64,000 nucleotides of DNA from Macrostomum lignano (GCA_002269645.1 NIVC01001847.1:1-64000), one strand, 5' to 3'. Numbered from the stretch's first letter, positions 1,891 through 53,329 are shown. Numbers and translations: made by a program. Notes: generated by a model not told the origin, from the sequence alone.

Positions 1891-4476
1891 CATTCTCGCT
1901 CCTGTCTCCCATATGCCGCATGCCACTTGAAGCGACTTCAGTCTCAGTTTCAACCACCAGCCCAGCAGCCGCACGCTCCTCCCCCCCGCAGTTCGCACCC
2001 CACCCGCGGTGCGTGAAAATGGAAGAAAAAAATTATTGAAACTCTTCTTGGAGAAAAACTCGAATTCGCACCTTCTTTTCCTGATTGACTTTTTCTGGCT
2101 TAACGGGTCCTCCCCTTCAGACAAGAATGATGGAGCATTTTTATCGGAAATAAGTGGGTCCTTTCGCCGCCCCCCCCCCGAGTTCCATTGTCACATTTTG
2201 CCTTTTCTTAACAATATTCACAAAATTTATGACTTTTTATGCGCGAGCAGGTTGTTGGCGTTGACTTCTTTAGAAGACTTCGGGGGGGATGGGTAATTAT
2301 CTTATTTTTTCAACGCCCCATTGACACCTGTGGACGCATCTGCTCAGGCATCAGAGACGATGACGAATGAATGAATAAAAGGATGCTGGAACGGTGAATA
2401 TTGCTGGCTAATTTTATGCAACTTTGACAAACTTTGCGGATAATTTCAGTTGAAATTTTTTTCTGATCAATAATCAGGAGGGAATGTTCGCAAACGACTT
2501 TGGGAGAATCTAAGTTTGAGACTGGTTGGCCTTTTTCGCTCTTCCCATGGGAATTTTTATGCCGAAGCTCAAGTGGCGAGCGGGGGGAAGGGAGAATTTG
2601 AATCGTAAAAAAGTGAGGCTGATGAGGGAATATTTGATGAAGCCAGGCAGAGGCTGGGGCACAAAGACAAGTATTGAGCATAGCCGTGATCGGGGAGAAA
2701 CTGACCACAAACAACAAAGACCGCAATGTATGGAAGGGCGAGTCAGTCGATCTCAGTTGATTGATGAAGGGGGGACTCTGGGATCTCGACTCCGATCTGA
2801 CTTCTACACATAGCGTGTGTCTGTCGCCAAGGCGGGTCGCGGTGGAGCTTCAGCTTGAAACTGACCCCTTAGCGACCGAATCGGGTGTGGGTGTGTGCTC
2901 AGCCGAGCATCCTTCCCACGCTGGGTCTCGGCCTTCCAGTTTATCGCCCTCCCCGCCCGCTTCGGTTGGTCAGCTGCCTGTCAAAACACTCGCTGATCTG
3001 ACGTACTGATGATAAATCGATGGACGTGAAACTGAGACCGGATTGCGGATGAGGAGGAATCTAATGGATTTTTATGTACATTGCATGCGCTGAGTCCCTA
3101 TCTGACATCTGCTGGTTCTCGAGCTGGATTTAGAAAGATGCTCATCTACACATGCGGGTGGGAACTGACACTGAATGTTTTTGGATATCCGTCCGTTTCA
3201 AACATGTTGAGAGTTCCACCTGCCCGCCTCGGATAGCCGTCAAACAACTTGAAAAACCCGTGGATTATGAAAAAAGCACAATTTAAAGTTTTTTTCCAGT
3301 TTCACACTTTCCTATTTATTTCAAACAATGGTATACTAGCCTTGGACTCGGCACTTGCAGTCAGCCACATGTTCGCCCCCAGTCCCCGCACAATATCTCT
3401 CTCGTATCAGGCAGTAAATTCCATAAGGATATCAGTTCTAAGAAAGTATTGCGTAACAGCCAATAAAAAGTTTAGTATATAATAAACAATATCGGCATTC
3501 GACTGGAGTTGAAACTTCGCCTGTATCTAAGGCAGGTGGGGTCAATATTAACTGGCAATAAATCTGTTCTTATTCGAAAAATTAGCACAGCTTTGAAAAT
3601 TCGAATATAGTAGCTCCGGATATGGCTGCGTGATTTTGTACAATGCACACAGATTGCACTGAGGTGTTTATTAAAACATGAAACAATGACATTACCATAG
3701 AAGCTGAACGAATCATCGTTGCGGTTGCTAGGACTACTTGGATTTTTTCAACTGTAGCTGTCAGACCGTGTCCACTATAGTCCTAATCACAGGGTCACAA
3801 TGGGTGACAGTGACTGCGGGACCGCAATGTGACTATTCAATCTATTCAATCTTGATTTGCCTAATTATAGTGGGAAAGAAGATGGAAGGAAAGAAGTCTT
3901 CTTACGCACTGTTTCCAGGGCCTGCAGTGTAACCTGCAGTCAAATTGTGCTCAAAGTTTTTTATTGCTATAGAAAAAATTTATACATACAAGATATCTAT
4001 TGTTACACATTTTTAGTTAAGTCTATATCTTTCTCTGACACAATCCATATTCGGTCTCGGATTTCGACCGAGCAGTTAACAAATATTACGCATCCAAACG
4101 CTCTGACGTCAATCACAAACACATTCTGCACTGGTTTAAAGCGACTTTTTCAATTGTCCTTCTTATCTACATCGAGGGCCCACTTCTAAACCGCGTATTT
4201 GACGACTTTCTGTAAGAGGGACTGCGCAATACCTTTGGTAGAGATTAGTTTCTCAAAATCGCTCTCCATTTCTCTGCCTTACTGATATTGGGTTTCTCGC
4301 AGTTGGTGCGAAAGATTAGCGCTGACTGATAAGATTTAAATGGTTCATGAAGTTCACGATGTGGGGCGATTGTTGGCTAATTAAGGCAGAATAAGACTGC
4401 CTGTGAGATTAGATGGAGATGAGCTTTTTATTGAGACTGGAAGAATGGCGAGTGGAGAGGGAGAAAGGATACAGAT

Positions 4477-5112
4477 GGTACAGAGGGTACAGAGGGTAGA
4501 GAGGGTACAGAGGGTAGAGAGGGTACAGAGGGTAGAGAGGGTACAGAGGGTAGAGAGGGTACAGAGGGAAAAGAGGGTAGAAAAGGCAGAGAGTGTACAG
4601 AGGGTACGGAGGGTACAGAGGGTAGAGAGGGTACAGAGGGTAGAGAGGCTACGGGGTACAGAGGGAATAGAGGATAGAAAGGGCAGAGAGTGTACAGAGG
4701 GTACGGAGGGTACAGAGGGTACGGAGGGTACAGAGGGTAGAGAGGGTACAGAAGATAGAGAGGGTACAGAGGTTAGAGAGGGTACAGAGGGTACAGAGGG
4801 TAGAGAGGGTACAGAGGGGAGAGAGGGTACAGAGGGTACAGAGGGGAGAGAGGGTACAGAGGGTACAGAGGTTAGAGAGGGTACAGAGGGTACAGAGGGT
4901 AGAGAGGGTACAGAGGGGAGAGAGGGTACAGAGGGTAGAGAGGGTACAGAAGATAGAGAGGGTACAGAGGTTAGAGAGGGTACAGAGGGTACAGAGGGTA
5001 GAGAGGGTACAGAGAATAGAGAGGGTACAGAGGGTACAGAGAATAGAGAGGGTACAGAGGATAGAGAGGGTACAGAGGGTACAGAGGGTACAGAGGGTAC
5101 AGAGGGTACAGA
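4477..5112. repeat. Purine-rich 9-bp minisatellite (gagggtaca / gagggtaga)
   Basis: Visible tandem array; source of the spurious VERVQR/TEG ORFs. Confidence 0.95.
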
Positions 5113-5543
5113 AGGGAGATATGAGTGATAGGAGAAGCAAACTGAAAATTCGTTCTAATTTTTGATTTTCGTAAAAACTGAATAACTGGAATCAATGCAA
5201 GGTTATTGATTTAATTGGCCTTGAACAGCGCAGTTATTCACATTTTGTTGTCTCTGAATTTTTATTAAGAGGCTAGGAAAAATTGGAAAATTGAAGTTAC
5301 AAATTTGAATAGTTGAATGCTTATATTGCATTTTTGTACATAATTATGAGCGGACAAGCTAGTTAATTAGACTAATAAAATTGACAGAGCACAGAGTTGA
5401 TTTATCTATAAATAAAACGGAGAATGCAATTTATGTACAATCAGTGCAATATGCTCTGTGGCGCGGGTATGTATTGTACATACAAAGGAATGTGGAAGAA
5501 GAGAGTAACTAAGCGCTATGTTGAACTGCATTCTACTCATTGC

Positions 5544-5963
5544 TCATGCTCGGGACTTGCCCAGCAGCAGGAGGCCCAGACGGCGCTGGATGTCGGCGGG
5601 CAGCGGCGTGTCGGCCAAGGGGCGTCGCTGGCTGGACTCGAGCCGCTGTCTATGGCCGAAAGGGTCAGTGTAGTCGAGAGAGCGCAGCTGCTCGGAGCCG
5701 TCCTGTCGGATCTCCAGGAGGCTGCCGTCGCTGAACAGGACCCTGGTGTCGTTGTCGCTCAGCTGCTGCACATCCGCCACCTGCAGCAGCGGCTGAGTCG
5801 GAATTGGAACCGGTGTCGGAGTCGGGGTAGACTTCGATGATGAGGTCGCGGGTTCGAGCCCCGAATCGGCTGGCGCTCGACCGATAGTGGCGGGGAAGCA
5901 GCAGCGGCCCGGCGAGGACAGGGCGGCCAGCGCGGATTCGACTCGTTTCACCTGGTCGAAGGT
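5544..5963 (-). CDS. PLK4: PLK4 exon 8 (end of PB2, PB3, stop)
   Basis: ttccAG acceptor; [12 protein letters not shown]...FPATIGRAP continues the PB2 helix; PB3 motif follows. Confidence 0.88.
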   Translation of the reverse strand, partial: TFDQVKRVESALAALSSPGRCCFPATIGRAPADSGLEPATSSSKSTPTPTPVPIPTQPLLQVADVQQLSDNDTRVLFSDGSLLEIRQDGSEQLRSLDYTDPFGHRQRLESSQRRPLADTPLPADIQRRLGLLLLGKSRA

Positions 5964-8900
5964 CTGGAATTAGCAAACGGGTATTAGAAATAATTAGCTC
6001 CGGATTTTGGGAAGTTCTTCCCACCCCTAGCGACCAAACCGATTCCCTCATTAGCCACCGGAGGGTGAATGACTTGAGCTTGCTTCGGCGAGCAAATTTT
6101 GCTCTCCTAATCTCAAGAGGATTCTCCATTCGGCTCTCTCTTGTCTCGCCTAAATCCCATGCGAAATATGCCTTGACTATATTGCCCGGTCAGATATGGC
6201 ACGCAGAGGAGGGGAGCTCGCCCTTAATGAGACACGCGGCCGCCTCTTCCGCCCGGGAATATTGATTAGATGAGGCGGGAATTATTTAGGAGCTGGAGAG
6301 AGGGATAAAATTTTGTGGCGCGGCTCGGGAATCTATATTGGACCAACAATGGCCACCCGCACGGCAACTAATTAAGGCGCTCAGAGCTCTGGGTGTGTCC
6401 GGCGCGGGTCAGCCAGCTAGCAACAGAGCTGCCCCCTCCCCCGCCCACCTGAGGGACGGCCGTGAGCAGTCTCTCAACATCCTCTCTGTGTGAGTGTGGG
6501 AGAGCGATTGAGTAAGCGGTTTCACAACACACACAGAGTGAGGGGTGACCTATGGCTACCAGTCGATCCACCCACCAGCTGTGACGGCCTCACAAAGCTC
6601 TCTCCCATCCAGCCTCCAATCTATTCATCCATTATTAGCCCCATCAGTCCAGGGGTTTAATTAGCATTGCCGAAATTCAAAGCTATAATATACACACACA
6701 GTAACTCGGGGGTAGGGCGATTTCGGCAATCAATTTTGGCAAAATCGGGCAAGCGGATGAAGGCAAAACACTGGACGGGGGGCAGGGATTGTGCTTGATG
6801 GGCCGCTGGCTCACCTCATTAACATAATGCAGAATCTCCGCTTCATCTGGCGACAAGCTGCGCAGCTCGACCGGCTTGCCGTCGACTGTCATTCGAAGTC
6901 CGCCATTGCGTCGACCTGCCCGACGGCCGTTGTAGAAGTACACGGCAAAGTCGGGCTCCGGGTCGCTGTTCTCGAACAGCACGCACCTGGCTCGGTCCGT
7001 GTGCAGCACAACCTTGGCGGTGTTGCTGCGCAGGATGCTGATGAAGGAGTCTGCGAGTTGGTAGAGTCGGGCAGCTCGGTCTGGCAGATCCGGGAAGATG
7101 AACTTCTCAGCTGATGACCAGTCCAGGCTGTCTTGCTGCTGCTGTTCGCTGATCAGAGCAACGTGTCGGCCATCTGGTTCGATTCTCAGCACCCTTCTTG
7201 GTGGCGTGGACTTCCTTCCACCGACTTTGAACTGTTCGACTGTGAGGTCACCATCGGCAGTCAGGCTGAACACGGTCGGGCCCTTGACAACCCGACACGG
7301 CTCCAGGCGGGCGGTGCTCAGCGGGTTCTGCGGCAGTCGACGTCCGCGCTGAGAGCCCAGCGAGGAGGTCGGGTTGGATGAGGCGCAGGACTGCGGACCG
7401 TCTGACACGGTGTCGAGAGGCTGCTGATGCTGCTGATGCTGTTGAAGCCTTGGAGCCGCCACAGGAGCCGCCTGCGGACCCAGCGGGCTGCCCTCGGACT
7501 GGACGGCGCTTGAGTAGCCTTCGCTGTGCCTGGAGTGCCCGGTCAGAACTCCTCCTGTGGCGGCGGTGGCGGCGTTGCTGGCGGCTCCTCCGGCCTGCCG
7601 ACCGTCTGAGTGGCACCGCCGCAGGCTGGCGGCCGTCTGCAGATGCGGCGTTGAAGCTGCTGCTGGCGCCGGTCGATGCTGGCGCTGCTCAACTTGATGA
7701 AGCTGAGGCCGGGACAGCGACACGGAGGCCGGAGTTGATGGCGTGGCGACCGATGAGGCGGCGGCAGGGATGGGGGTGGAGGCGGCCAGACAGTGCGAGC
7801 CGCTCTGAACCGAATCGTTGCCCGAATCGTTGCTGGCGCTTCTCTCCTAGAAGATTCGCAGAATTGGAACAATTAATAGTTATTGTTGAAGACCGAATGG
7901 AGAATGGAAAAATATGATTTTTTTCTCTCTGTGGAACAATTGTCGTTACTCCATTAAATTCTAATAATAATAACCGCCCCGTTTTGGTTGACGAAGTTCG
8001 AAAAATGGACCGGGGGACTGTGATGAGTCCGCTTTTGTTTTGTCCGAACCGAAGCTCAACAAGTGCCTTGGCAACCAGATTTTTAGAGAGAGAGATAGGG
8101 GCTACTGATGGGCACTTGATAGGATTGAACCTCTACACACTTTCATTTCTCACCTGCACTCAAAACTTTTCCAACGCTCGAGTATCGAGTGCTCAAAAAT
8201 AGGCGAGAGTGATGCATGGGATACAATCGATCCGCTATTCCCCACCCTCTGCAGTCCATCTGGTTTCTATAGGGTATGCAACAGCGGCTCTCAAGAGCTG
8301 TGAATGGCAGAGTAACAGCATATATAGCATCGGGGTCTATAGATTCTCAAAATATTAAAATATAGGAGTTTAATTTTCTTCCCCGCGAATCCTCTCCTCT
8401 GCAAGCAACAGCGCTTGTTGCGTCCATTTTGCTTTCATCGCAATCCCTGGTTGCTAGGATGACCAGTTGGCCAGTCCCTCTGGCTCGCTCGGTCAAGGGA
8501 AGCTGAGCTGAGGCATTTCGGCTTTTTAGAATGGCTTTTGAAGGATAATAAATATTTACAATCGAGGAGGGGGGATCTGGAAGCCGGTGAGAGGAGACGG
8601 CGAGCAATCTCTCCCACAGCTCAAAGTCTTACGCAATAAGTTGGTCACTTTTTGTTATACGGCGTCATCCCCGAGACGGGAGGGCGGACAGACGGGGCTA
8701 TCGCAACAGCTTAGGAATTCCCATCCATCTCATGCCATGGATACTGGGATCAGGGGGTGTAGGGGCGTCGTTATCGAAGATAAGACGAAATCCTTCATGT
8801 GTTTGGGGGGCGGCTGGCCTCTGTGTGTGATAGAGATTTTGTCTACAGTAGCCACCCACCTGTCGGCAGATATCGACAAATTCCCTGACAGTGTGACATG

Positions 8901-17029: not shown

Positions 17030-17875
17030 GCTTTTTGGATTGGCGCCATTAAAATAATTTTTGATTTGGCGCTATTTAAACGGTTTTGGCGCGATTGAAA
17101 CATTTTTGGTTTTGGTGCGATTGAAACAGTTCTGGTTTTGGCGCCATTGAAACAGTTTTTGTTTTGGCGCCATTGAAACAGTTTTGGTTTTGGCGCCATT
17201 TAAACAGTTTTGGCGCCATTGAAACAGTTTTTGTTTTGGCGCCATTGAAACAGTTTTGATTTGGCGCCATTTAAACAGTTTTGGCGCCATTAAAACAGTT
17301 TTGGTTTTGGCGCCATTGAAACAGTTTTTGTTTTGGCGCCATTGAAACAGTTTTGGTTTTGGCGCCATTGAAACAGTTCTGGTTTTGGCGCCATTGAAAC
17401 AGTTTTTATTTGGCGCCATTTAAACAGTTTTGGCGCCATTGAAACAGTTTTGGTTTTGGCGCGATTGAAACAGTTCTGGTTTTGACGCAATTGAAACAGT
17501 TTTGGTTTTGGCGCCATTGAAACAGTTTTTGTTTTGGCGCCATTGAAACAGTTTTGATTTGGCGCTATTTAAACAGTTTTGGTTTTGGCGCCATTGAAAC
17601 AGTTTTTGTTTTGGCGCCATTGAAACAGTTTTGGTTTTGGCGCCATTGAAACAGTTCTGGTTTTGGCGCCATTGAAACAGTTTTGATTTGGCGCCATTTA
17701 AACAGTTTTGGCGCCATTGAAACAGTTTTGGTTTTGGCGCCATTTAAACAGTTTTGGCGCCATTGAAACAGTTTTGGCGCCATTGAAACATTTTTGGCGC
17801 CATTAAAACATTTTTGGTTTTGGCGCAATTGAAACAGTTTTGGTTTTGGCGCCATTGAGTTTTTGCGCCATTGAA
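17030..17875. repeat. ~20-27-bp minisatellite (ttttggcgccattgaaacagtt...)
   Basis: About 35 visible copies. Confidence 0.95.
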
Positions 17876-19186: not shown

Positions 19187-20146
19187 ATCAGTATCAAACT
19201 CAGGGGTGTCGGCATCAAACTCAGGGGTGTCGGCATCAAACTCAGGGGTGTCGGTATCAAACTCAGGTGTGTCGGTATCAAACTCAGGGGTGTCGGCATC
19301 AAACTCAGGGGTGTCGGTATCAAACTCAGGTGTGTCGGTATCAAACTCAGGTGTGTCGGTATCAAACTCAGGGATGTCGGTATCAAACTCAGGCGTGTCG
19401 GTATCAAACTCGGAGTGTCGGTATCAAACTCAGGTGTGTCGGTATCAAACTCAGGGATGTCGGTATCAAACTCAGGCGTGTCGGTATCAAACTCGGAGTG
19501 TCGGTATCAAACTCAGGTGTGTCGGTATCAAACTCAGGTGTGTCGGTATCAAACTCAGGGATGTCGGTATCAAACTCAGGTGTGTCGGTATCAAACTCAG
19601 GGATGTCGGTATCAAACTCAGGGATGTCGGTATCAAACTCAGGGATGTCGGTATCAAACTCAGGTGTGTCGGTATCAAACTCTTGGGTGTCGGTATCAAA
19701 CTCAGGAGTGTCGGTATCAAACTCAGGTGTGTCGGTATCAAACTCAGGGATGTCGGTATCAAACTCAGGCGTGTCGGTATCAAACTCGGAGTGTCGGTAT
19801 CAAACTCAGGTGTGTCGGTATCAAACTCAGGTGTGTCGGTATCAAACTCAGGGATGTCGGTATCAAACTCAGGCGTGTCGGTATCAAACTCGGAGTGTCG
19901 GTATCAAACTCAGGTGTGTCGGTATCAAACTCAGGGATGTCGGTATCAAACTCAGGCGTGTCGGTATCAAACTCGGAGTGTCGGTATCAAACTCAGGTGT
20001 GTCGGTATCAAACTCAGGTGTGTCGGTATCAAACTCAGGTGTGTCGGTATCAAACTCAGGTGTGTCGGTATCAAACTCAGGGATGTCGGTATTAAACTCA
20101 GGGGTGTCGGTATCAAACTCAGGCGTGTCGGTATCAAACTCAGGGT
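19187..20146. repeat. 21-bp minisatellite (ggtatcaaactcaggtgtgtc) with a higher-order structure
   Basis: About 45 copies, ending about 50 bp before the TRP start codon. Confidence 0.97.
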
Positions 20147-20194
20147 GTATCCCTAAGCACCCAGTGACTCCAGCACTTTTTTTATTCTCCAGCC

Positions 20195-23100
20195 ATGGCC
20201 GAGCTCAGACTAGTACTCGAGTACTCATGCCCAGACTCAGACTACGAGCGGCTAAAACGAGCCATTGAATCGAGCGTCCAAGCTGGCCAAGAGGAAATTC
20301 TGCGGGCCTTGGTTAGCAACGATGGTCGCAACCTCAACGACTTCGGCGTGGACGTTCTTTTCGAAGCGGTGGAAGACATCTCGGATCTGTCCGTGTTGAA
20401 GTTCCTTCTGCGCAGGTTGGGCGGCGAAGCCATCGGCCAGGTGCGTAACGAGCTGAATCTGAGCGTCGTACACCTCGCCGCGCTCATCCAAGACCGCGAG
20501 CTGGCCGCGGAGACGATGCAGACGCTGCGCAACGCTCTGGGCGACGGCTGTTTCTCGGTTGTAAGCGGGCTGAACAGCACCGCGGCTCACTTTGCCGCCA
20601 AGAACAGCAACGGTCACGAGGTGCTGATATGGATCCTCGACAATCTTGGCCAGCAGGCGCTTACAGTGAAGGACTCGTTGGGCGACACAGCTGTGCACCT
20701 GGCCGCCGAGTTCCAGACTGACGAGTGCATGCGGCTGCTCAAGGCCAAACTGCCGCAGAGAGTCTGGCAGGCGCGCGGGGCGCTGCGCCGGACCCCGGTG
20801 CACCGGGCTGCGCTTAATTGCACCGGTGAACAGAGCGGTGACACGCTCAAATGGATGCTAGAGAATCTCGAGCTGGAGGTATTTAAGAAGCCTGACGCTG
20901 AGAACAATACGGCTGTTCACCTGGCCGCTCGACACCAGGGATTCGAGTGCATGCAGATGCTGCAAGATCGCCTTGGCGCCAGCTGCTTCTTAACTCCCGG
21001 CTATCAACTGCAGACGGCGGTGCACATGGCGGCCAGGAATGAGAACGGCTACGCCGCTCTTGAGTGGTTCGTGACAAACATTGGAAGCATCGATCATCTC
21101 TTAATTAAGGACGCCAACGGAGACACGGCTGTGCATGTCGCTGCCGAATATCAGGACGACGAATGCATGCAATTGTTTTCAACCCGGCTACCACCCGAGC
21201 ACAACGTCTGGCAGATGGAGGGAGGCTTGAAACGTACCCCGGTGCATCGGGCGGCACTCAATGAGAAGTCGGTCTTGACTCTTCACTGGATTCTGGACTA
21301 TCTTGCCAAGCGGCCGGCGATTTTTCAGCTGAGGGACGCACAGGGCGACACGGCGATTCACTTGGCTGCACAGGTGCAGAGCGACGAATGCATGGAACTG
21401 CTTTCTCAGCATCTGACACTAGAAAATCCGGTGTGGAACACCGCCGGAGCGAAAGGCCGAAAACCAGTTCACTGTCTAGCGGCCAATGCAATTCAACGAG
21501 AGTTCTTGAAGGTCCTGGTTGATAAGCTTGGTTCATCAGCTCTTACTGAAGTAGATGAAGAACTGCTAACTGCTATTCACTTAGCTGCCTCCTATCAAAG
21601 CCTCGCTTTATTCCAGTCGCTGGTTAGTTGCGCAGGCAAGGACTCCATTACGCTCAGAGACAAACACGGTTGGACTCCACTGTTCATGGCCACAGGCAAC
21701 GAGCGTCACGAGAAAGATGAATCTGTGTTCTTCTGGATGATGAACCAACTGAAGGGAAGTCAGGAGCAAGAACTGGCCAGCAAGGATAGCGACGGTAGGA
21801 CTTGTCTGCATTTGTGCGCCCGCAACAGAGCCTTCGGGGCCCAGATGTTTGTTCAATCGGCGCCACAGCACCAGTTCGACGACCCCTCCGATGCGGTCGC
21901 GGCGTCAGTTGACAAGAACGATAGAAATCCGCTGTTTTTGGCCTGTCTGTTGAAGAACTTCAACTTTTTCAAAGCGGAATTTATCGACGTGAAACGGCAT
22001 ATGTGCATCGATTCGGTGGGAAACACACTGCTACATGCGCTGTTCCTCACCTCTGAGTCATTCCCTAACCGGGACTTTGACGCGGACGAGTTTGTGTCAG
22101 CGGTCAAGAAGCTCATCGATGGAGGCGTTGATCCCAAGGTGGAGAACAATGTCAAGAAGAATTGTTTGATGAGCGCTGAGTTCAGTCAGCGCACGCTATA
22201 CGACGTGTTGGTGAGGCTTTCCCACCTGCCGGAATTGAAAGAGGCATTCAGTAGGCTGCAGAGAAACTCCGACGGCTTGCATGTTGTTCACGTGTTTTCC
22301 GGCCGTTACGACATCAGATTCTTAGAAGCTCCATTGAAGCAGCTTTTCACGCTGAGCTCTGACAAACTGTTAAATATTCGAGTGTCGTCGGGCTCGCTTA
22401 GCGGAGCAACTTGTCTGCACTTTGCCTGTGAAGCCGGTCACGAGGAAAACCTGAGGTTTCTAATTGGCAAAGGTCTCTGCGATGCAAGGCTTGGTTGCGA
22501 GACAGCTTCCGGTCAGACGTGCGTTGACTTTGCGTGCAACAAAGGAAAGCTGGACGTACTTAGAAGCGCCGCTGCCGATGCTGGCGTCGATCTGAGGGAG
22601 ATTCTGCTGCTGGTCGATCCGGTCAAGAAGGCACTGCAGCTGCCAGACAAAACCAGTGCCAGGAATCTGCTGTCCCTATTCACTGACCCTGTCCTGAGAT
22701 CCGATATTGAGAGAGACAGAGGATTGCCCACAGCTGGGGATGAAGCTGAAGGACAGGCATCTGCTGCGGAGTCTGCCGACGTTAAGCTGCTCATCCGAGC
22801 TCTGGAACTTGACTCTACAGAGATGCTTCGAAGCCTTGTAGTGCTGGATTACGTCACTGGAGACACGGATGATCGTCTTATCAAGGCGTTGCGCAAACGA
22901 TATCAGTCAAAGAATCCTAGCCAGCAAAAGTACTTTCCAAATATGGAAACACTGGATTTAATAGCTACTACTCGGACAGAATTATCGCTACTGGATTGCG
23001 TCATATTCTTTGATAAGGCAAACCTGCTATCCGACTTGATGGTTCTGCCACAGTTTGACATCATACCTCAGACACTGCGGCTGCTAATCAACATGACACC

Positions 23101-24538
23101 TCAAGTTGAGATGCGAAGAGGAAGACATGAACAATTGAGCGAAATGATGAAGCAAGCCCTGAACGTTCTCACTAATGTTCTCGAGCAGTTGTACGTCAGA
23201 GCCGATCAGAACGAGCGTGAACTTTTGTTCCGCTACTTGACTGCGGACTTCAAGAAGGATGAAGTGAGCGGTCCGAAGTTTCAGGCTCCGTTAAAAAAAT
23301 TCGTCGATAAAAAGGGCAAAGTTGTGGCTCCGTTTTCGGGCCCGGCGGAATGCTTCTCGGTCATGCAGCTGGTCGACACAGTCGATTGCGACGAGCTGTT
23401 TGCAACCAACTGCCTCAGCAGCATGATCGACGAACAGTGGAAGAAACCGCCTCCTCTGTCGTGGCGTACAAGCAGTAGCAGTCAACCGTGCTGCCCGAGC
23501 TTCAATAGCAGTTGCAGTCCTGGCAGCCGACCTGACGGAGTCCCTAGCTTTTTATTGTCAGTTCGATTTCGAGTCTGGATTCACATGGTCTTCTTCCTCT
23601 TCTTTCTGTGCTTCTTCTCCTGGTACGTAACGGATTTTGGCCAGTCGTTGAAGTCGCAGGCCGCGGCTGTGCACATTGTTGATGCAGTCATGTGGATGTT
23701 CGCTTTATCATTCGCCACGCAGGAGATAAATGACATGGTTAATAGGGGAGAACTCAAAGATACCTACGCTTGGGGAAGGCATCTGAAAGTACCCAGGTAC
23801 TTCACAGATTTATTTAATTATTTTGATCTGGCCGCAATCTTACTGCTGTTGGCTGGGCTCATACTCAAAATAGTGAGCACGGGAGGCGATACAACCAGCC
23901 TGCACAATGCCCAAGTAGTACTGAGCGCATCGTTTCTGCTCTGGGGATTTCGGTCGGTATCCCTGCTTAGCTACTTCAAGGTCACTGGACCAAAAATATC
24001 GATGCTGAAAAGCCTTCTATTAAGCGACTTGGCCCCATTCCTGATCATAATGCTTGTGCTGGTCTATTCGTTTGGCATATTCTACGTGAACTTGCTATTT
24101 CCCGTGACCCTCTCTACTGCGAGCATTTTACGCGACTCGGAGTCAATAGCCAAGCAAGTGTTCTCCCTGCCGGTCTCGCTGGCGTTCGGCTTCTTTGAAG
24201 GCGCCGAGAGCGTAGTGTGCAACGGGTCCAGACAGACTCTGGAGGCGTGCTCAGACCATGCCGGCTACCGGGCGTACAGCGGCCTGCTAATGTTCCTCTA
24301 CTTGCTAATCGTGAACATAGTGATGTGGAACCTGCTAATTGCACTGTTTAACCTGACAGTCACCAGCATGGACACCAAAGCAGAGGTGATTTGGCGTAAA
24401 AATCTGTACGAGATGCTGGTCGAGTTTTCCGAGGTCAGCCCGTTTCCACCGCCGTTTTCGTTTCCTCATTACATTTGCAAGCTGGGGCGGTACGCGTGTC
24501 GGCGTCTGGAGAACCGTCGTTCGGTTCAACCGGAAGAG
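20195..24538 (+). CDS. TRP cation channel, exon 1: about 18 ankyrin repeats plus 6-TM TRPM-like pore and TRP box (reading through the donor gives the 1468-aa ORF ending at 24601)
   Basis: Repeated TAVHLAA/TPVHRAA ankyrin motifs; hydrophobic S1-S6; GPKISML..DL, NIVMWNLLIALFN, IWRKNLY..EF and PFPPPF motifs; strong acceptor and Kozak-like context before the ATG. Confidence 0.92.
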
Positions 24539-25488
24539 GCAAGTACAATCAACACTTTGAATTATGATTTAAAAGACCATGCAAATTTTGCTGTGGGCTG
24601 ATTTTCCGCTGCAAATGCAAAGGTAAGGAAGCTTCCAGTTTTTTAGCACTAAATTCCCAATGTATCACCTTCTGGGCTTACGAATTCCAAATGAGGCGCA
24701 AAGCTGACTATGAACATGTTTCGTTTGAGATGCACTCATAAATTTATCAAGCCGTTTTTCATGAAATACTACCGGGAGACCGGCAAACATGTAAAGTTCC
24801 TTTTGGCGAAGTGTCTGTTGTTCCTGTCTCTTTAACGGTAGAACTACCAAGGAGGGGACCCTTGCAAATTTTTCGTTGCGCTGGAATGACGCAAACCAGG
24901 CACTGGAATTTCAAGTGCTTCAAATTTCTAAGCACTCTCTCAAGCATTCAGTCGTCTTCCAGACGCCGTCGCCTGCTTTACCGGTCTGTAGCTATCAAGC
25001 GACTGTGGACACCCAATTGTGAATTTCTTTGTTGTCTCTGGTCAAGCCCCGGTGTTCTTGAATTTCGTGTGCCAGAGCTGTGACTCCGTTCCGGCGCGCA
25101 GCAAAAAAACTGTTCCCCTTTTTTGGTCGTTCAATTAACGGGCGGAAATGGTTGTAAATTTCCTACTGTTAATGCACTTCTTTAGGATTATTAGCGGGTA
25201 CTACGTTCCATAGACCTATTCAGCGCCAGGCAAAAGAAGTAAAAATTTGTCAAATATTTGTTTAGAAAACACAACCTGTACTCTTGAGCGCTGCCATTCT
25301 CCGAATAATATTTTTCCTTAGACTTTTCTCGACGTCAACTCGACGTCGACGTCAACGTCGATGTCGACGACGAAGTATCGTGTTGTTAATTTTACTGTCG
25401 ATTATCGATAGAAATAAGTACCTTAACAGTTTTCGACGAATCTTACACTTAAATGGTAACAGCTTTCATCTTCTCGCAATGAATTTAG

Positions 25489-25824
25489 AAGCAGAGTCCA
25501 CCCTGGTGGCAGGAACGCAGTAGTTTTCACGACTATCCCAACGACTATCGGCAGTTTCTGGTGTACCAAGCTGAGCAGCTCCGCCAGTGCCGCCCCCGAC
25601 TGCGGCAGGGCGTTGAGCGGCACAGAGACGCATTCGAGGCGCTACGAGCGCACACGGAGAAAACTGTTGACGGAACTCGCGACGAGCTTGCCAGGATGGT
25701 GAAGCGAGAAACTCTGGACATCAGAGAGCAGCTTCACAGACTGCGACGTAATCAAAAAAAGCAGCAAAAGCAGCTGTCGCAGGTGCTCGATTTGTTGAAG
25801 CATTCACAAGCGGCAGCAAAATAG
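25489..25824 (+). CDS. TRP channel exon 2: C-terminal helix and coiled coil (KQSPPWWQ...YRQFLVYQAEQLRQ...KHSQAAAK*)
   Basis: Open frame from tttAG at 25488; phase 0 matches the AG|GCAAGT donor at 24538/24539; coiled-coil-like tail as in TRPM channels; spliced product about 1559 aa. Confidence 0.75.
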   Translation, partial: KQSPPWWQERSSFHDYPNDYRQFLVYQAEQLRQCRPRLRQGVERHRDAFEALRAHTEKTVDGTRDELARMVKRETLDIREQLHRLRRNQKKQQKQLSQVLDLLKHSQAAAK

Positions 25825-36667: not shown

Positions 36668-37897
36668 TTAGAAATTGCAGTTTCTGGGAAGGTCCCGGAA
36701 TTCCGGCCAGCCCATCTGCGTGAAGAGCCACCTCAGCTCAATATTCACCAGTTGACGCTGGAAAGGCTGTCGGCTGGCATTGATGTCTCCTCGGACTTGG
36801 TCGGCCACGTACTGCAGAATGGCGAACAATTCGCCGCGCTGATAGCGAGCGCGCAGCTGCCGAAGTCCTGGCCAGATGTATGCGCGTTGAGGCAGCGCTT
36901 GGTCAAGCCTCAGGTGAGCGATGCGCATCATATACGTGCGAATGCCATACATCACCCGCTCCAGCGGGGTGCCATGCATGTCCATCAGTTGCTGCGCCAC
37001 CTCTCGATACGATCTCGTCGGCTGCTGTGGCGCAGGAGGCGGCTGCGGCTGCGGCGTTGACTGTCGTGGCGGCTGCTGCGGTGCTTGCGGCTGACGTGAT
37101 GACGATGGCTGACTTGGCGGTGCTGGCGGTCGTTGCTGAGGCGAAGCTCGGCGTCGCGGTGGTCGATCTGCTGGCGGGTTCGCCAGTTGTACCGTGCGCT
37201 GTCCTTCAGCAGCACACGTCTTGAACACGATTGATTTCACTGGAGCCTTCGCCTGGGCTTCCAGGATAGCGGCGCGCTTCGCCGGTATTGGCTCTGGTCC
37301 TGGCGGTTGGTTTGGCGGTGGCCTCTTCGCGGTTCCTGAGACAGCTCGTGGCCTGGTCGGGTTCCGCAGCGGAGCCTCGCCGATGTCTGGGACTGCGACT
37401 GATGGTCCTGCCGCCTGCTGAACAGATGCTGACTGTTGGATTGGCTCGGTTATTGGCGGCTGATCCGTCAAAGCTGCTGGCTGTTGAGCTGCCGGAGCTG
37501 CTGGCTGCTGAGCTGCCGGAGCCGGAGCTGCGGGCTGTTGAGCTGCCGGCCGAGCTGCTAGCTGTTGAGCTGCCGGAGCCGGAGCTGCGGGCTGTTGAGC
37601 TGCCGGCCGAGCTGCTGGCTGTTGACCGACGATTTGCTCGGCGGCTTGCTCTGCGGCCGGCTCTAGATTATCCATGGACTCATCTAGTCCTAGGAAGTCC
37701 TTAAGAAACTCGTCTAAGTCGTCGTTCATGATTTCTAACCTCTTTAATCGCAATAGTCTAGATAATTGTTCTCGGCCTGAGGTGTGATCGACGGGTCTGG
37801 GGAGCTGTGGGTGTCCGATTACGTATCTGAAAAACTGGACCGCATCTTCGTGTTCGCACGAGTGGGGGTTTAGCAAATTTCTAACGGGCTCGCTCAT
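36668..37897 (-). CDS. Gypsy ORF3, 409 aa, unknown function, not Env-like
   Basis: Intact ORF between pol and the PPT; helical/acidic N-terminus, P/Q/A-rich centre, about 110-aa globular-looking C-terminus; no signal peptide or TM segment visible. Confidence 0.85.
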   Translation of the reverse strand: MSEPVRNLLNPHSCEHEDAVQFFRYVIGHPQLPRPVDHTSGREQLSRLLRLKRLEIMNDDLDEFLKDFLGLDESMDNLEPAAEQAAEQIVGQQPAARPAAQQPAAPAPAAQQLAARPAAQQPAAPAPAAQQPAAPAAQQPAALTDQPPITEPIQQSASVQQAAGPSVAVPDIGEAPLRNPTRPRAVSGTAKRPPPNQPPGPEPIPAKRAAILEAQAKAPVKSIVFKTCAAEGQRTVQLANPPADRPPRRRASPQQRPPAPPSQPSSSRQPQAPQQPPRQSTPQPQPPPAPQQPTRSYREVAQQLMDMHGTPLERVMYGIRTYMMRIAHLRLDQALPQRAYIWPGLRQLRARYQRGELFAILQYVADQVRGDINASRQPFQRQLVNIELRWLFTQMGWPEFRDLPRNCNF

Positions 37898-38125
37898 TGG
37901 CTCACACCGTTACTAAGCGTTGCTAGGATGTTTATGCGGAACGAGTTTCGAACAATACCTGCACAATTCTCTATACTCTACTGTTAGTAATGCGCAAAAC
38001 ATTTTTATTTAATACTGTATATGCAAATTTAATATTTTTGTATTTTTATAAATTTTATGATTTTTACTTTTTATGAGTTTTTTATATTGAGTCTATTTAC
38101 ACATTTTTACATGGATTCGGCTTCA

Positions 38126-41100
38126 TCACTTTCGGTAGTGTGAGTAACGCCTCCGGGGAACAAAGCCTGTTGCGACTGAGTTCTCTCGGGGTCTCAAATT
38201 ATATTGATGTCTTTGTTCGGCTCTTTCATTCTCACCTATCTCTAATGCGTCATCTTCCTCAGCTAACTCAGTTCTTTCACTGTCTGTTGACTCATCTTCT
38301 ATCTCATTCTGCTCAATTTCCTCTTGCTTAACTTCTTCCTCAATTGGCTCGATCTCTCTTGCTCTCCACTGAATTCTTTCGTCTTCCGAACTGTCAGTTT
38401 CTATTATTGGCTCTAAATGATTTTTCTTACTAATCTGTTGCCTTCCCTTATTTTTCGGCTCTCTCTTTTTCTGTTGTTCTCTCTGCCTTCCCCTATTTGT
38501 AGGTTCCGTCTCTTTATTTGGTTCATTCGGCAAATCTATTTGCGAGTTGGGTACTGGAGTGAGGTTGTTTCGATGTACGAGCATCTTCTCGCCAATCCTT
38601 ACTCCGTCTATTTCTCGCTGTACTCGAAATACTGTTTCGGAAAGTCTCGCAAGGACTCTGAATGCTGCTCTTTTCTTGCGGTGAAATTTATGGCTTTCTT
38701 CACTGTGTAACTGCGGATTGTTAATCAATGCGAGGCATCCAACCGGTACATGCTTCGGTGGCTTGTTCTCAGCATTTTCCTCCTTTCTACGGTCCTTTAC
38801 CTTCTCTAGCTTCTTTTGCACGAGTTTCTGTGCTTCTTCGAGCCTTTCAGCATGGTTTAGCACATAGCTCGGATAATCGTGATACTGCTTTGGCCTTCGA
38901 ATAATACTGTCTATCCTAAGATCTGCCTCCCTACCAAATAGCAGGTAGTGCGGCGTGAATCCGGTGGTCTGGTTCACACTAGTGCGCACAGCTACCAGAG
39001 CTGCGGGAATTAGCAAATCCCAGTCGGAATGATCTTTCTCTACTAGACAAGTTACTATTGACTTTATTTGTTTATTGAATCTTTCGACTAGTCCGTTACT
39101 TTGTGCGTGATACGGTGTGGTGCATGTATGCTTGATGCCATACATCCTACAAAATGCTTGGAACTGACGGCTGACGAATGTCTTGCCATTGTCAGTGTGG
39201 ATCCACTGGCATTGTCCGTATTCGCTAAAGATCCTTTCTTGTATGATCTTAATCACTGTATCCGATTTCTGGTTTCGCACTGGAAACGCAAACGGAAACC
39301 GAGTGGTGCTATCTACTACTGTTAGTACGTAGCGATGACCTCTTCGACTCTCTTTTGAGATCGGTCCAATCAGATCAATATGGATCCTATGAAACGGTTC
39401 GCATATTGGAAAGGACTGCACTGGCGCCTTCACCTTATTTCCTGCCTTACTCTCCAAACAAGGAATACATTCCGAAATATACTTCTCTACTGCAGTTGCT
39501 AGCCCTGGTCGCCAAAATCGATCGCGTACACGCTGAAGTGTTTTATCACGACCTAGGTGACCTGCGAGAGGACTGTCATGCAACTCTCGGAATACCTCTT
39601 TCTCTATATTCTCTGGCAACACGACCTTTCGTGTCCCGTCTTCGTCTATGGTCAATAACTCGTCTTCTAGCTTCATCTGCTTATAGAACTTTAACATCTG
39701 CTTCAACTCTCTAGTCGCATCTTCTGGCAATTTCGGCTCTCGGATACTCTGCTCCTTCCAGGCTATCAGCGTCCTCATAGAAGGGTCGTCACGCTGAGCT
39801 GATGTCAGCTGCTCCTTCTTAAGCGGGACGAAGAGATAGTCGGTTAGGAGTTTCCGACAAGCGGTCTCACTAACGTTTTCTTCCGCATCCTCATACACTT
39901 CTTCATCATCAGCGAAGTAATCGCTGGCGTCCTCATACTCTTCTTCTTCATCTTCGAAATATTCTCTTGCATCTTCGTACTCTTCATCGTCTTCTACTTC
40001 TTCTCTAATTGGATCAGTCTGACAGCTCTGGTGCTTACAGCTTGAGATATTGGTCTGACTTCGGTTTACCGTAACGGTAGGAAGTACTGGACCTATCTCA
40101 GCTTTAGTGCACTTTTCTGCCTTAGTCTCCTGATTATCTTCTAATCTTTCTGCGGGTCGTCTGGATAGTCCGTCTGCATTGGTGTGTTTAGCACCGCTGC
40201 GGTGTTCAATGTCATACTGAAACTCACTTAATCTCTCAATCCATCTACCGAGGATTCCCTGCGCTTCAGTCTGGCGAAGTAGCCATAGGATAGCGCGATG
40301 ATCTGTTCTTGCCAGGAATCTCTTTCCGATGAGATAGAATCGGAAGTGTTTCATTCCGTCAACTAATGCTAGCAATTCTTTTCTCGTGATTGGATACCTC
40401 TTTTCTGATTCTTTCATGGCTCTGCTAAAGTACGCGATGGGTCTTTCGACTCCATCGGATTGTATCTGACCTAAGCAGGCTCCGATTCTATCATCACTCG
40501 CATCAGTGTCAAGCACCATTCGAACTCCTTCGTTGTCTGTGAACTCTGGGTAGGCTAAGACTTCGGTTGATGTCATTTTCTGCTTTAGTAGCGCAAAGGC
40601 CTCATCATGGCTCTTAGTCCACTTCTCTTTAAAATTCTGAATTCCCTTCTTAGTTAGCTGGAAGAGCGGGTGCGCTGCTTCCGCGTAATTCTTCACGAAC
40701 CTACAGTAATAGTTACAGAGACCTAGGAAGCTCCTTAATTCTTTAACGTCCTTAGGCGTCGGCCATGACTGAATTGCTTCTATCTTAGCTGGATCTGTCT
40801 TAATTCCTTCTCTACCAACTATGTGTCCTAGATATTTAAGCTCTTTTTGAAATAGATTACATTTCTTCGGCCTTAATTTTAATCCGGCTGTTACTAGTCT
40901 CTGGAACACTTCTCGTAGGTGATCCAGGTGATCCTCAAATTTCGTTGAGTAAGTTACTATGTCGTCAATGTACGACATGGCGAATTTATGTTGAATCCCC
41001 ATCAATACTAGGTTCATTAGTCTCTGGAATGTTCCAGGTGCATTAGATAGTCCCTGCGCCATGACCTGATACTCGAACTGTCCCCTAGTCAAAGTCGAAA

Positions 41101-42649
41101 ATGCTGTCATGAATTTATCCTCTTCCTTAATTGGTACCTGCCAATAACCTGAATTTAAGTCTAAACTACTGAAATATTGACTTCCCGTTAGATGAGAGAA
41201 AGTTTCCTGAATATTCGGCAACGGATACGGATAATAGTTAACTCGAGAGTTCAAGACTCTGAAATCACTGACAATCCTAATTGTTCCATCTTTCTTAGGC
41301 ACTATTACTAATGGCGTCGAATAAGTGCTATAGCACGGCCTTATTAAATTTTTAGCGAGCATATCGTCTAACTGTTCGTCTACTTGCTTCTGCAGATGTG
41401 GTGGTATTCTGCGAGTAGGTATTCTGACTGGCGTCGTATCCTTCAGCGAGATTTCATGGGTCACTAGATGAGTGAGGCCCATCTCCTGGCTTGTCTGCGA
41501 GAATGCTTCCCTATTCTCTTTCAGCAGCTCGACTACCTTTTCTTTCTGCTCTGATGATAGCTCATCTGAGATGTTAATCTCCTGAATCCATTCATCAGTA
41601 TCAGCAGTTTCAGCGCATTTCGCGGATTTAACTTGTCCGGTGTCATTCTTGGTAACGAAGTACGTTAGTTCTTCGGCTTTTAATGGCTTGGCAATGCCTA
41701 CCATTGCTGATTTCCTAATTACTACGTCGTTGTTCTGCCTATTAATCACTTCTACCACACCAGTTCCATCACTCATCGTTAATAAAGTTGGAACCATATC
41801 CAGTGTGTCATCTTTTACTGAGATATGTCCTTTAGTGGTCTCAATCATCATTGGCGTGCCGAAGTTCATTTCTGCTCGTTTAGCTAGTTTGACTGGTATT
41901 CTTAAAGCACTATTAGCTGGCACAACTACCTTGTCGTGACAGTAGACTCGGCACACTCGTACCGGCAATTTAGTAAACTGCATCGGAATGCAAACTCCGG
42001 TTTTTAAAATCATCATCCCTTTGTCAAAGCTCATACTCTCGCAAAAGTTCATAAAGAAATCCATTCCTAGGATATCATCACACTCATGGTTGCACAGCAG
42101 GAAGTCGGTCACAATTTCTACTTCTCCGAACATTATCTTTATTGTCACTTCTCCTTCGATTCGCACAATTGATCCATCGAATGTGGTCACTCTTTGATCA
42201 GATGGCCTGATCTCTTGTTCTCTACATACTCTTCTCCAAGTACTTTTACTTAGAAAGTTACGACCGGCTCCTGTGTCTAACAGAAAGCGAATATTCTGCT
42301 TGCGGATCTTTCCGTCAATGACTGCTTCTCGGCCTTTCTTCTCTGTGCCGGCATCTAAACTTGTCTCTTCTTCTGCACTTTCATTCAGCTTGACGTACTC
42401 TTCTGGCTTCGGAGTACTTTTCTTGTGTAAGCAATCAGGTGCACGCGTAGTATTTACATTCGGTACTGTATGTGCATTCGCATATTTTTTGTTGGGTTTT
42501 CTAAACTTATTATAATTTTCGCATGATTTGTACTTGTACTGCTTATTAACTTTGTACGCATTATTTACAAATTCAGAGGCCTGAATTTTGCTCTGGATTT
42601 CGCTAGAGGGACGTGGCCTCGTTATTCGGCCCTCGCTTCTCAGTTTCCC
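38126..42649 (-). CDS. pol: Pol polyprotein (protease, RT, RNase H, integrase) in the -1 frame relative to gag
   Basis: Frame open from the slippery site; LLDTGA protease, YIDD RT, DASD RNase H, HHCC (HDSPLAGH...CIPC) and DDE (IDLIG, TDNG, VERFN) integrase. Confidence 0.97.
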   Translation of the reverse strand, partial: GKLRSEGRITRPRPSSEIQSKIQASEFVNNAYKVNKQYKYKSCENYNKFRKPNKKYANAHTVPNVNTTRAPDCLHKKSTPKPEEYVKLNESAEEETSLDAGTEKKGREAVIDGKIRKQNIRFLLDTGAGRNFLSKSTWRRVCREQEIRPSDQRVTTFDGSIVRIEGEVTIKIMFGEVEIVTDFLLCNHECDDILGMDFFMNFCESMSFDKGMMILKTGVCIPMQFTKLPVRVCRVYCHDKVVVPANSALRIPVKLAKRAEMNFGTPMMIETTKGHISVKDDTLDMVPTLLTMSDGTGVVEVINRQNNDVVIRKSAMVGIAKPLKAEELTYFVTKNDTGQVKSAKCAETADTDEWIQEINISDELSSEQKEKVVELLKENREAFSQTSQEMGLTHLVTHEISLKDTTPVRIPTRRIPPHLQKQVDEQLDDMLAKNLIRPCYSTYSTPLVIVPKKDGTIRIVSDFRVLNSRVNYYPYPLPNIQETFSHLTGSQYFSSLDLNSGYWQVPIKEEDKFMTAFSTLTRGQFEYQVMAQGLSNAPGTFQRLMNLVLMGIQHKFAMSYIDDIVTYSTKFEDHLDHLREVFQRLVTAGLKLRPKKCNLFQKELKYLGHIVGREGIKTDPAKIEAIQSWPTPKDVKELRSFLGLCNYYCRFVKNYAEAAHPLFQLTKKGIQNFKEKWTKSHDEAFALLKQKMTSTEVLAYPEFTDNEGVRMVLDTDASDDRIGACLGQIQSDGVERPIAYFSRAMKESEKRYPITRKELLALVDGMKHFRFYLIGKRFLARTDHRAILWLLRQTEAQGILGRWIERLSEFQYDIEHRSGAKHTNADGLSRRPAERLEDNQETKAEKCTKAEIGPVLPTVTVNRSQTNISSCKHQSCQTDPIREEVEDDEEYEDAREYFEDEEEEYEDASDYFADDEEVYEDAEENVSETACRKLLTDYLFVPLKKEQLTSAQRDDPSMRTLIAWKEQSIREPKLPEDATRELKQMLKFYKQMKLEDELLTIDEDGTRKVVLPENIEKEVFRELHDSPLAGHLGRDKTLQRVRDRFWRPGLATAVEKYISECIPCLESKAGNKVKAPVQSFPICEPFHRIHIDLIGPISKESRRGHRYVLTVVDSTTRFPFAFPVRNQKSDTVIKIIQERIFSEYGQCQWIHTDNGKTFVSRQFQAFCRMYGIKHTCTTPYHAQSNGLVERFNKQIKSIVTCLVEKDHSDWDLLIPAALVAVRTSVNQTTGFTPHYLLFGREADLRIDSIIRRPKQYHDYPSYVLNHAERLEEAQKLVQKKLEKVKDRRKEENAENKPPKHVPVGCLALINNPQLHSEESHKFHRKKRAAFRVLARLSETVFRVQREIDGVRIGEKMLVHRNNLTPVPNSQIDLPNEPNKETEPTNRGRQREQQKKREPKNKGRQQISKKNHLEPIIETDSSEDERIQWRAREIEPIEEEVKQEEIEQNEIEDESTDSERTELAEEDDALEIGENERAEQRHQYNLRPRENSVATGFVPRRRYSHYRK

Positions 42650-48377: not shown

Positions 48378-48759
48378 AGAGGCTCTCCAAGCAGCACATT
48401 TTTAACGAATATTTAACTTTGCGCACCGTGATTGTAGAAATGGACACACGATCTTTGTTTTTCTGTGCTCCAGGCGTTTTCAGTGTACGAGTACTTGCAA
48501 TCGTTTAACAGCTTTTTGTTTCTATGTAATTATGCTTTGTCTTGAATCTTTCCTTTAGGATGCATGAGGAAGTTGATACACTGATGAGCTTTTGCTGCCA
48601 AATGTTTTCAGTTTTTTCTCCAGTAGTCACCTTGCGTACTGTACGAGTACTCGGCACTTATGCTACTTCTCGTTTGACTTATTTTAATTTTTGCTTAAAA
48701 AATTCTGCGCACAGTAGGCACGAATATTATAAACTGATAGTTCGGTGATTGTCAGCTTT

Positions 48760-49240
48760 CTAATTAATGAGTTAGCGAAGTCACAAATTGCCAAAGTTAG
48801 GTCGATCTGTAGTTGTCCGATAGCTTTACAACTTGACCAGAATGCAACTCGGCTTGGTGGCTGAATCACTTGGTGCCCTCCGAGTAACCTGTTTCGATGC
48901 ACTTTAATCATAGTGCTCATATGCTGTCTTAATTGTGGAATTTTGAAAAAAATTGCATGCTTTCGGGAATCGAGTCAAGTCTGGTGTTAGCGTGGCGTTT
49001 TGCGAGGAATCTTTCTGTTTCTGCTGTTGGTTTTCTCTGCTGCTGTTTTGACCTTGAAAGACCTTCCAAGTGCTGTGAGCAGAATGGCGGTCTTCAGCTC
49101 GTCGCTTTCATTATCTCGCTTCGCGGCTGTGAGGGAGAGCGCGAAACCAGCAATTCATGTTTTCACTTCTTCATCTGTTCTCATCGAATCGATGGATGCT
49201 GGTGGCTTCAACTCTCCTGTATCAGCCAGCCATGTGTATC
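48760..49240 (-). pseudogene. Degenerate Ty3/Gypsy gag remnant
   Basis: IAGFALSLTAAKRDNESDELKTAILLTALG and LAICDFANSLIRK resemble Gypsy gag; many stops. Confidence 0.45.
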
Positions 49241-53050: not shown

Positions 53051-53329
53051 TAGGACTCCACTGCCACTCTACCAGTCACCCTGCTACTCCAATTTTCACC
53101 CTACCTACCCTGCTAACTGTTCAGCAACTTCTCTTAACCCATTTCCTCTGCCATTGCACCTTTTTAGAATAATACCCTATTAAATGATTTTTAATTATTA
53201 GATAACTTATTAAAGAATGAAATTGTTTTGATAGTGTTTCAAACACTGCCCTTCTTTTATTTAATTCTCACCTACCGAATACTCGTAAACTACAGAGTGG
53301 TAAATGCGATTGCCGTTGTGTAAAACATT

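Follow-up and report, generated by a model that had tools for sequence, protein, structure and literature searches.

The stretch analysed here, called the window, comprises 64,000 nucleotides of the flatworm Macrostomum lignano (GCA_002269645.1, NIVC01001847.1:1-64000) and carries on its plus strand, at 20195..25824, a gene for a predicted ion channel of the transient receptor potential (TRP) type. Most of the gene is a single uninterrupted open reading frame (ORF) at 20195..24601, which encodes 1468 amino acids, and the predicted spliced product joins 20195..24538 to 25489..25824 and has 1559 amino acids. With a probability of roughly 80%, this product is a flatworm-specific TRPM-like channel that has a TRPM core and a linker similar to melastatin homology regions (MHR) 3/4, with the SLOG/MHR1-2 part replaced by about 18-20 ankyrin repeats, and that belongs to a Macrostomum clade sister to the TRPM_MCLZ group.

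Coding exon 1 (20195..24538, residues 1-1448) contains the ankyrin array, the linker, segments S1-S6 and the TRP helix, as judged from the uninterrupted ORF and from matches to Pfam ankyrin families and Ion_trans. Its end is placed at 24538 because a phase-0 GAG|GCAAGT donor (24538|24539) lies there and because the product is colinear with the M. lignano paralogue P0001. The predicted intron, of the GC-AG type and phase 0, spans 950 nucleotides (24539..25488, plus strand) and ends at the acceptor TTTAG|AAG (25488|25489); it is indicated by these splice signals and by a paralogue intron at the homologous position. Coding exon 2 (25489..25824, plus strand, residues 1449-1559 and stop), recognised from its translation and from homology to the P0001 C-terminus, encodes a PWW..YP..Y..FL.YQA motif and then a helical tail free of proline and glycine. 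Its frame opens at 25489 and reads KQSPPWWQERSSFHDYPNDYRQFLVYQAEQLRQCRPRL...AAAK up to the stop codon, which ends at 25824. Exon 2 is considered real because P0001 continues colinearly from the TRP box through the matching motif, into '...GSEPWWQNKKDFSGYPEGYKRFLIYQAKRLREHRPRL' and 'PWWQ..YP..Y..FL.YQA..LR..RPRL'. In a paralogous M. lignano locus (L001), an intron with a canonical GAG|GTAAGC donor is found at exactly the same position, and its acceptor immediately precedes CCG TGG TGG.

Alternative donors were checked by hand, and only phase-0 donors can reach the open frame of exon 2. TCG|GTTCAA is weaker than GAG|GCAAGT, and so is GCT|GTGGGC, which would moreover insert 18 residues that have no paralogue counterpart. 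The junction of GAG|GCAAGT with TTTAG|AAG is the sole one that preserves both the frame and the paralogue spacing. The 1448 codons of exon 1 and the 111 codons of exon 2 are open, without stop or frameshift, and the locus is apparently an intact two-exon gene that has escaped annotation. Upstream of it, a 21-bp minisatellite (GTATCAAACTCAGGGGTGTCG) occupies 19191..20145 with about 46 copies at 92% match and ends 50 bp before the channel ATG, and a 26-bp minisatellite, with about 34 copies and a 149-bp higher-order period, lies 2 kb farther upstream of the 21-bp array, at 17033..17858. Long ORFs at 19114-20268 are spurious, because they arise from the minisatellite arrays.

The ankyrin-repeat solenoid covers residues ~86-795 (20450..22579, plus strand) and has about 18-20 repeats according to Pfam, a repeat hidden Markov model (HMM), AlphaFold2 and structural matches. 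Five Pfam ankyrin families match over residues ~50-800 (Ank_2, E=1.6e-43), the repeat HMM finds 16 units from residue 86 to 793, and the AlphaFold2 model of residues 1-830 (pLDDT 83.8, pTM 0.70) predicts ~18-20 consecutive helix pairs, whose best structural matches are 24-repeat ankyrin-R/B solenoids, the NOMPC array and the 17-repeat array of Drosophila TRPA1. In the core of the array (20675..21556, plus strand), an identity matrix separates two alternating repeat types: type A (D..GDTAVHLAA..Q.DECM) starts at residues 161, 235, 307 and 382, and type B (G..RTPVHRAA.N) at residues 196, 344 and 419. Mutual identity is 54-60% among the type A repeats 161, 307 and 382 and 56% between the type B repeats 196 and 344, against 16-35% for cross-type pairs.

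No Pfam LSDAT_euk or TRPM2-domain match, which would mark SLOG/MHR1-2, was obtained at E<=1 in the window protein, and in the same test the canonical proteins P0033 and P0036 score 1e-67 and 1e-70 for LSDAT_euk. The 1-830 model matches ankyrin solenoids only, and no SLOG-like fold. Compared with canonical TRPMs (TRPM2/3/4/8), the protein is therefore without SLOG/MHR1-2 and has ~18-20 canonical ankyrin repeats in its place. It resembles TRPN (NOMPC) and TRPA1 in carrying a long N-terminal ankyrin solenoid on a TRP channel with six transmembrane (TM) segments, and the repeat arrays of NOMPC and Drosophila TRPA1 can be superposed on its predicted solenoid, but it differs from them in its TM core, which is of another type, in the two-type alternation of its array and in its TRPM-like linker.

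The TM core, residues ~1121-1425 (23555..24469, plus strand), was delimited with phmmer, AlphaFold2 and Foldseek and comprises S1-S4, the S4-S5 linker, the pore helix with an FGFFE filter, S6, the TRP helix and a PFPPPF segment; Pfam Ion_trans matches residues 1133-1393. GPKI (1265-1268) lies in the S4-S5 linker, NLLIALFN (1379-1386) in S6 and IWRKNLYEMLVEF (1399-1411) in the TRP helix, followed by PFPPPF at 1416-1421. When the TM region alone (353 residues) was compared with PDB by phmmer, 89 matches were obtained, and 59 of the best 60 of these 89 are TRPMs, headed by TRPM3 (4.9e-19) and TRPM2 (6.5e-18) and then TRPM1/4/5/7/8. The sole other chain among these 60 is a 'TRP-like ion channel' (6pw4, 1.3e-8), and none is a TRPA, TRPN, TRPC or TRPV chain. 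For an AlphaFold2 model of residues 700-1448, which was built with 20 relatives (pLDDT 72.3, pTM 0.63), the top 50 Foldseek matches in PDB are all TRPM3, TRPM4 or TRPM8 (E down to 7e-13); the alignments span 650-850 columns for 749 query residues and reach the linker before S1, with a high root-mean-square deviation. By sequence and predicted fold, the channel half is of the TRPM type and not of the TRPA, TRPN or TRPC type.

Between the array and the core, residues ~796-1120 (22580..23554, plus strand) form a helical linker, which contains the motifs LPDK.SARN, LELDSTEMLRSL, LPQFDIIPQTLRLL and VDCDELFAT and which hhalign and Foldseek relate to the MHR3/4 and pre-S1 region of TRPM. In hhalign, the linker of clade A, the Macrostomum clade of the window gene, matches the linker of the TRPM_MCLZ group at 93% (E=3e-7), and the latter matches the pre-S1 region of SLOG-bearing TRPMs at 98.7% (E=2e-16), so that the clade A linker is probably homologous to the TRPM MHR4 region, only transitively, via the TRPM_MCLZ group. 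The window protein is like canonical TRPM in the stretch from S1 to the TRP helix, which gives the best sequence and fold match, in its helical C-terminus and perhaps in its MHR3/4-like linker, as well as in the GP of the S4-S5 linker, the NLLIA.F of S6, the TRP-box Trp and the PPP(F/L) segment. It differs from canonical TRPM in being without NUDT9-H, without a kinase domain and without a Pfam TRPM_tetra match.

An earlier note on this DNA had read in it about 18 ankyrin repeats, the central ones of two alternating types, the four motifs GPKI, NLLIALFN, the TRP box and PFPPPF, a TRPM-type channel half and an end at 25824, and all of these are recovered in the predicted product, the last coordinate being that of the stop codon of the second exon. 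The C-terminal coiled coil of the same note is weakly supported: a possible one lies at ~25675..25821 (plus strand), where the tail, residues ~1511-1559, has no Pro or Gly and its heptad pattern was reached by 55 of 2000 shuffles, and the Pfam scan of the protein gave no TRPM_tetra match.

Relatives were collected by an exhaustive HMMER search with residues 851-1448, which returned 690 proteins at E<=1e-3 and 27 at E<=1e-30. A word-indexed protein search gave 2, 1 and 3 matches, and paralogues at 50% identity that HMMER had recovered were not among them. Nearly all of the closest ~33 relatives are M. lignano proteins that combine ankyrins with Ion_trans. Ankyrins in the relatives were scored with a consensus-ankyrin query and with Pfam. 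Among the 33 closest representatives, 21 have Pfam ankyrins and one has SLOG, this one being a canonical octopus TRPM, and ankyrins and SLOG are mutually exclusive in the 208 collected relatives (0 co-occurrences). By cluster look-ups, 21 representatives at 50% identity are M. lignano proteins, all uncharacterised, and the ankyrin-TRPM design recurs in 21 or more divergent clusters of M. lignano paralogues. Other ankyrin-bearing relatives are found in the trematodes Opisthorchis viverrini, O. felineus and Dicrocoelium dendriticum and in the cestode Schistocephalus solidus. The family is ~25-30% identical to canonical TRPMs. All ankyrin-bearing relatives with a named organism belong to Platyhelminthes, bar one entry of a bacterial metagenome-assembled genome (MAG), which agrees with the lineage-specific combination proposed in the earlier note. 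The MAG entry, P0006/P0155 (MEE4247282.1, on a 5106-bp contig), is a clade A protein of 1537 amino acids, 42% identical to the window protein and filed under 'Kangiellaceae bacterium'; it is almost certainly mis-binned animal (flatworm-like) DNA.

In a neighbour-joining tree built from 89 TM-region sequences (312 columns, 100 bootstraps), clade A, which is composed of the window gene, the M. lignano paralogues and the MAG contaminant, has 100% support, as has the core of clade B, which holds the parasite sequences and excludes the window gene. Clades A and B together are split from all SLOG-bearing TRPMs with 90% support. On these sequence data, the window gene is placed in a separate, Macrostomum-expanded sister clade of the TRPM_MCLZ group and is not a TRPM_MCLZ orthologue. 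The most economical history would be that SLOG/MHR1-2 was swapped for an ankyrin array in a flatworm ancestor and that a large Macrostomum expansion followed, because the distribution is limited to flatworms and the MHR4-like linker is retained. P0138 and P0208, which come only from the Logan run DRR639838, branch just outside the TRPM_MCLZ core clade and are basal in clade B. P0208, encoded at 1298..4516 of L003 in that run, has 1072 amino acids with ankyrins and Ion_trans and is 60% identical to P0138; its source organism would show the reach of the group beyond the named flatworms.

Some paralogues and relatives have records of their own, whereas a look-up of P0001 returned none. L001 (8160..13400 of M. 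lignano NIVC01001982.1) contains a two-type ankyrin super-repeat of ~74 amino acids, the linker and the TM core, split over several frames; the public model of this locus, P0002, is truncated, as it breaks off within S1, and a reverse transcriptase ORF of a non-LTR (long terminal repeat) retrotransposon lies just downstream of the channel locus. P0011 (UniRef A0A1I8IKQ9, 1988 amino acids, M. lignano) is a family member named 'EF-hand domain-containing protein'. STIM1-type EF-hand and SOAR domains were found in one of the 33 scanned relatives, which may owe them to a gene model that runs on into a STIM gene next to it, or to a genuine fusion of channel and STIM.

The combination of ankyrins with a TRPM-type channel has been described in a parasite. 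Park et al. (J Biol Chem 2024) cloned Sm.TRPM_MCLZ (Smp_333650), the target of meclonazepam in the schistosome, as cDNA from Schistosoma mansoni, and in HEK293 cells it gives a linear current-voltage relation, reversal near 0 mV and a Ca2+ signal (PMC10788528). TRPM_MCLZ, which has the ankyrin-TRPM design, is proven to be a non-selective cation channel gated by a ligand. A 2024 review describes it as having ankyrin-repeat modules instead of NH2-terminal MHR1/2 or SLOG (PMC11731825), and a 2026 paper proposes 'TRPM-like' as the group name (PMC12861061), so that a TRPM-like channel with N-terminal ankyrins, no MHR1/2-SLOG and few exons is on record (PMC10788528, PMC11731825, PMC12861061). The novelty that the earlier note attributed to the architecture is overtaken, because this design appeared in the literature of 2023-2026.

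Clade B is identified from its sequences as the TRPM_MCLZ group because of its pocket residues, its variable S4 residue and the Opisthorchis Ion_trans duplication. Its members carry S1 H-x3-H, S2 Y-x3-E and S4 R-x2-[H/Y/F], which match Sm H827/H831, Y864/E868 and R943/H946 as mapped by Park et al. At the variable S4 position they have F, H or Y, in full agreement with the published variation, and in the Opisthorchis proteins Ion_trans is matched over two stretches, in line with the duplication of exon 3a/3b on record. The window protein is like TRPM_MCLZ in that ankyrins replace MHR1/2-SLOG in front of a TRPM-type voltage-sensor-like domain (VSLD), pore and TRP helix, in the small number of exons (3 in TRPM_MCLZ, 2 in the window gene), and in the S2 Glu, S4 Arg and TRP-helix Tyr of the VSLD pocket. 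Identity to four TRPM_MCLZ-side sequences is 22-27% over the TM region, the ankyrin region has ~710 residues in the window protein versus ~250-300 detectable in the clade B proteins P0051 and P0134, and the filter reads FGFFE, whereas that of the TRPM_MCLZ group is aligned as FEVS. In the meclonazepam pocket, Sm H831 is replaced by F, Y864 by F and H946 by S, and sensitivity of the window channel to meclonazepam is not expected, since these three residues differ.

The TRPM-type Ca2+-site positions of the window protein are E1177, D1180, N1208, D1211 and E1410. In human TRPM2 they correspond to E843, Q846, N869, D872 and E1073 of the VSLD Ca2+ site, and in TRPM2/4/5/8 these positions coordinate Ca2+. 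Of 16 clade A members, 15-16 keep each position but the second, where D, E or N is found. Two residues of the VSLD ligand pocket, R1253 in S4 and Y1405 in the TRP helix, are conserved as well, and the conservation of the putative Ca2+ site and of the pocket residues argues for TRPM-like gating; the earlier note had thought novel gating possible. The pore filter is F-G-F-F-E in the window protein and generally F-G/T-x-F-E/D in clade A, while canonical TRPMs have Y/F-G-E/Q-L/V-F, so a hydrophobic residue stands in place of Glu/Gln. Ion selectivity would differ from that of canonical TRPMs because FGFFE replaces Y/F-G-E/Q. The subunit may assemble as a tetrameric cation channel, which intracellular Ca2+, and perhaps a small ligand in the VSLD pocket too, would gate or potentiate, and the ankyrin solenoid could act as a docking module, or as one that couples the channel to force, to partners or to the cytoskeleton, in replacement of SLOG nucleotide sensing.

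Several points weigh against this reading of the gene and of its product. The gene model of the window copy was built from sequence comparison, its intron has a donor of the rare GC type, and its product has no entry as an annotated gene product in the gene catalogue. The direct hhalign comparison of the clade A linker with the MHR4/pre-S1 region of TRPM is not significant, and the C-terminal coiled coil is weakly supported. At the Ca2+ site, the second ligand position is Asp in the window protein and Gln in TRPMs, and the site was assigned by alignment to human TRPM2 with residue numbers from the literature; the filter is unlike that of any characterised TRPM, and its conduction properties are a guess. 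The trees are neighbour-joining and unrooted and were made without TRPC, TRPN or TRPS outgroups. When more sequences were aligned over a shorter stretch (125 sequences, S3 to TRP helix), the 23 ankyrin-bearing ones all fell in one SLOG-free split of 32-33 sequences, with a bootstrap of only 34%. Clade B was recognised by diagnostic residues, taxa and exon duplication and not by direct comparison with Smp_333650.

Another explanation concerns the history of these families. TRP evolution papers hold that TRPM and TRPS lack ankyrins (PMC7306681, PMC13143021), and Himmel et al. inferred that the loss of ankyrins preceded the split of TRPM and TRPS (PMC7306681). TRPS (soromelastatin, ced-11-like) is sister to TRPM and divergent, and its core is TRPM-like (PMC7306681); it keeps SLOG and has no ankyrins, the reverse of the window protein. 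The ankyrin-bearing flatworm channels might be a relic of an ankyrin-bearing TRPM/TRPS ancestor and form a separate TRP family outside canonical TRPM, which would accord with this inferred loss, with the position of all ankyrin-bearing sequences on one side of the 90% split of the unrooted tree, with the absence of SLOG from the S3-to-TRP-helix split and with the low identity to canonical TRPMs. This explanation is unlikely, however, since a distribution confined to flatworms, bar the MAG entry, requires losses in all other phyla, and since the linker homology to the TRPM-specific pre-S1/MHR4 region and the long fold alignment suggest descent from an MHR-bearing TRPM.

It is rather improbable, too, that the gene is a recent, unexpressed or decaying duplicate, that is an incipient pseudogene, or an artefact that fuses two neighbouring genes. 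Such a status would fit a product without an annotated gene record, a GC donor instead of GT, a 21-bp minisatellite that abuts the start codon and the very many M. lignano paralogues, some of them at fragmented loci such as L001. Both exons are nevertheless open throughout, the functional residues are conserved, and the ankyrin and channel domains lie in one exon, so their fusion is not a splicing artefact; the same fusion is found in the M. lignano clusters, in trematodes and in cestodes, and the S. mansoni cDNA was cloned. A TRPN-, TRPA- or TRPC-type channel with convergent TRPM-like motifs, to which the resemblance of the solenoid to the NOMPC and Drosophila TRPA1 arrays and the appearance of NOMPC in the full-length PDB search could point, is largely refuted and scarcely credible, because the NOMPC match is confined to query residues 124-500, which are ankyrins, because the 60 best TM matches and the Foldseek top 50 hold none of these types, and because the protein has a Ca2+ site of the TRPM kind and, behind its TRP helix, the PPPF segment.

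With a flatworm-specific TRPM-like channel as the preferred reading, flatworms break the rule that TRPM and TRPS are ankyrin-free families (PMC7306681). One ankyrin-TRPM channel, TRPM_MCLZ, is already a validated anthelmintic target, and the lasting interest lies in how large and how divergent the Macrostomum clade is, to which a gene apparently absent from the current annotation is added. M. lignano is a free-living, genetically tractable flatworm for which RNA interference and transgenesis exist, and the expansion would be a safe and tractable model for the role of an ankyrin array on a TRPM core and for the evolution of the VSLD drug pocket. A description of ankyrin-TRPM channel expansion in Macrostomum was not found in the literature. 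Tentatively, and with more doubt than confidence, clade A may be an undescribed TRP subfamily of free-living flatworms, sister to TRPM_MCLZ, with dozens of divergent M. lignano paralogues, long two-type arrays, a non-canonical filter and possibly a sensory repertoire, which together with TRPM_MCLZ would make up a flatworm-wide family ranking with TRPS.

Other elements are present in the window. A Ty3/gypsy-type LTR retrotransposon, named from its ORF content and not from LTRs, lies on the minus strand at 36668..43665. It comprises, by Pfam, a gag ORF with a zf-CCHC knuckle (42640..43665), an intact pol ORF of 1354 amino acids with reverse transcriptase, RNase H and integrase (38126..42190) and a downstream ORF of 409 amino acids (36668..37897), which has no Pfam match. 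A look-up of the pol ORF returned no record. At least four single-exon C2H2 zinc-finger ORFs, with 4-10 fingers each, are clustered on the plus strand at 47079..61097, with starts at 47079, 50239, 56336 and 59814; one of them, 47079..48377, is on record with identical coordinates at NIVC01001847.1, the contig whose start the window is. An ORF at 6683..7723 on the minus strand matches the Plk4 polo-box domains PB1 (E=2e-9) and PB2 (3e-7) and probably belongs to a Plk4/SAK kinase gene as one of its exons. In 2-kb windows, GC skew reaches -0.445 at 52001..54000 and +0.36 at 4001..6000, and both stretches are probably simple repeats.

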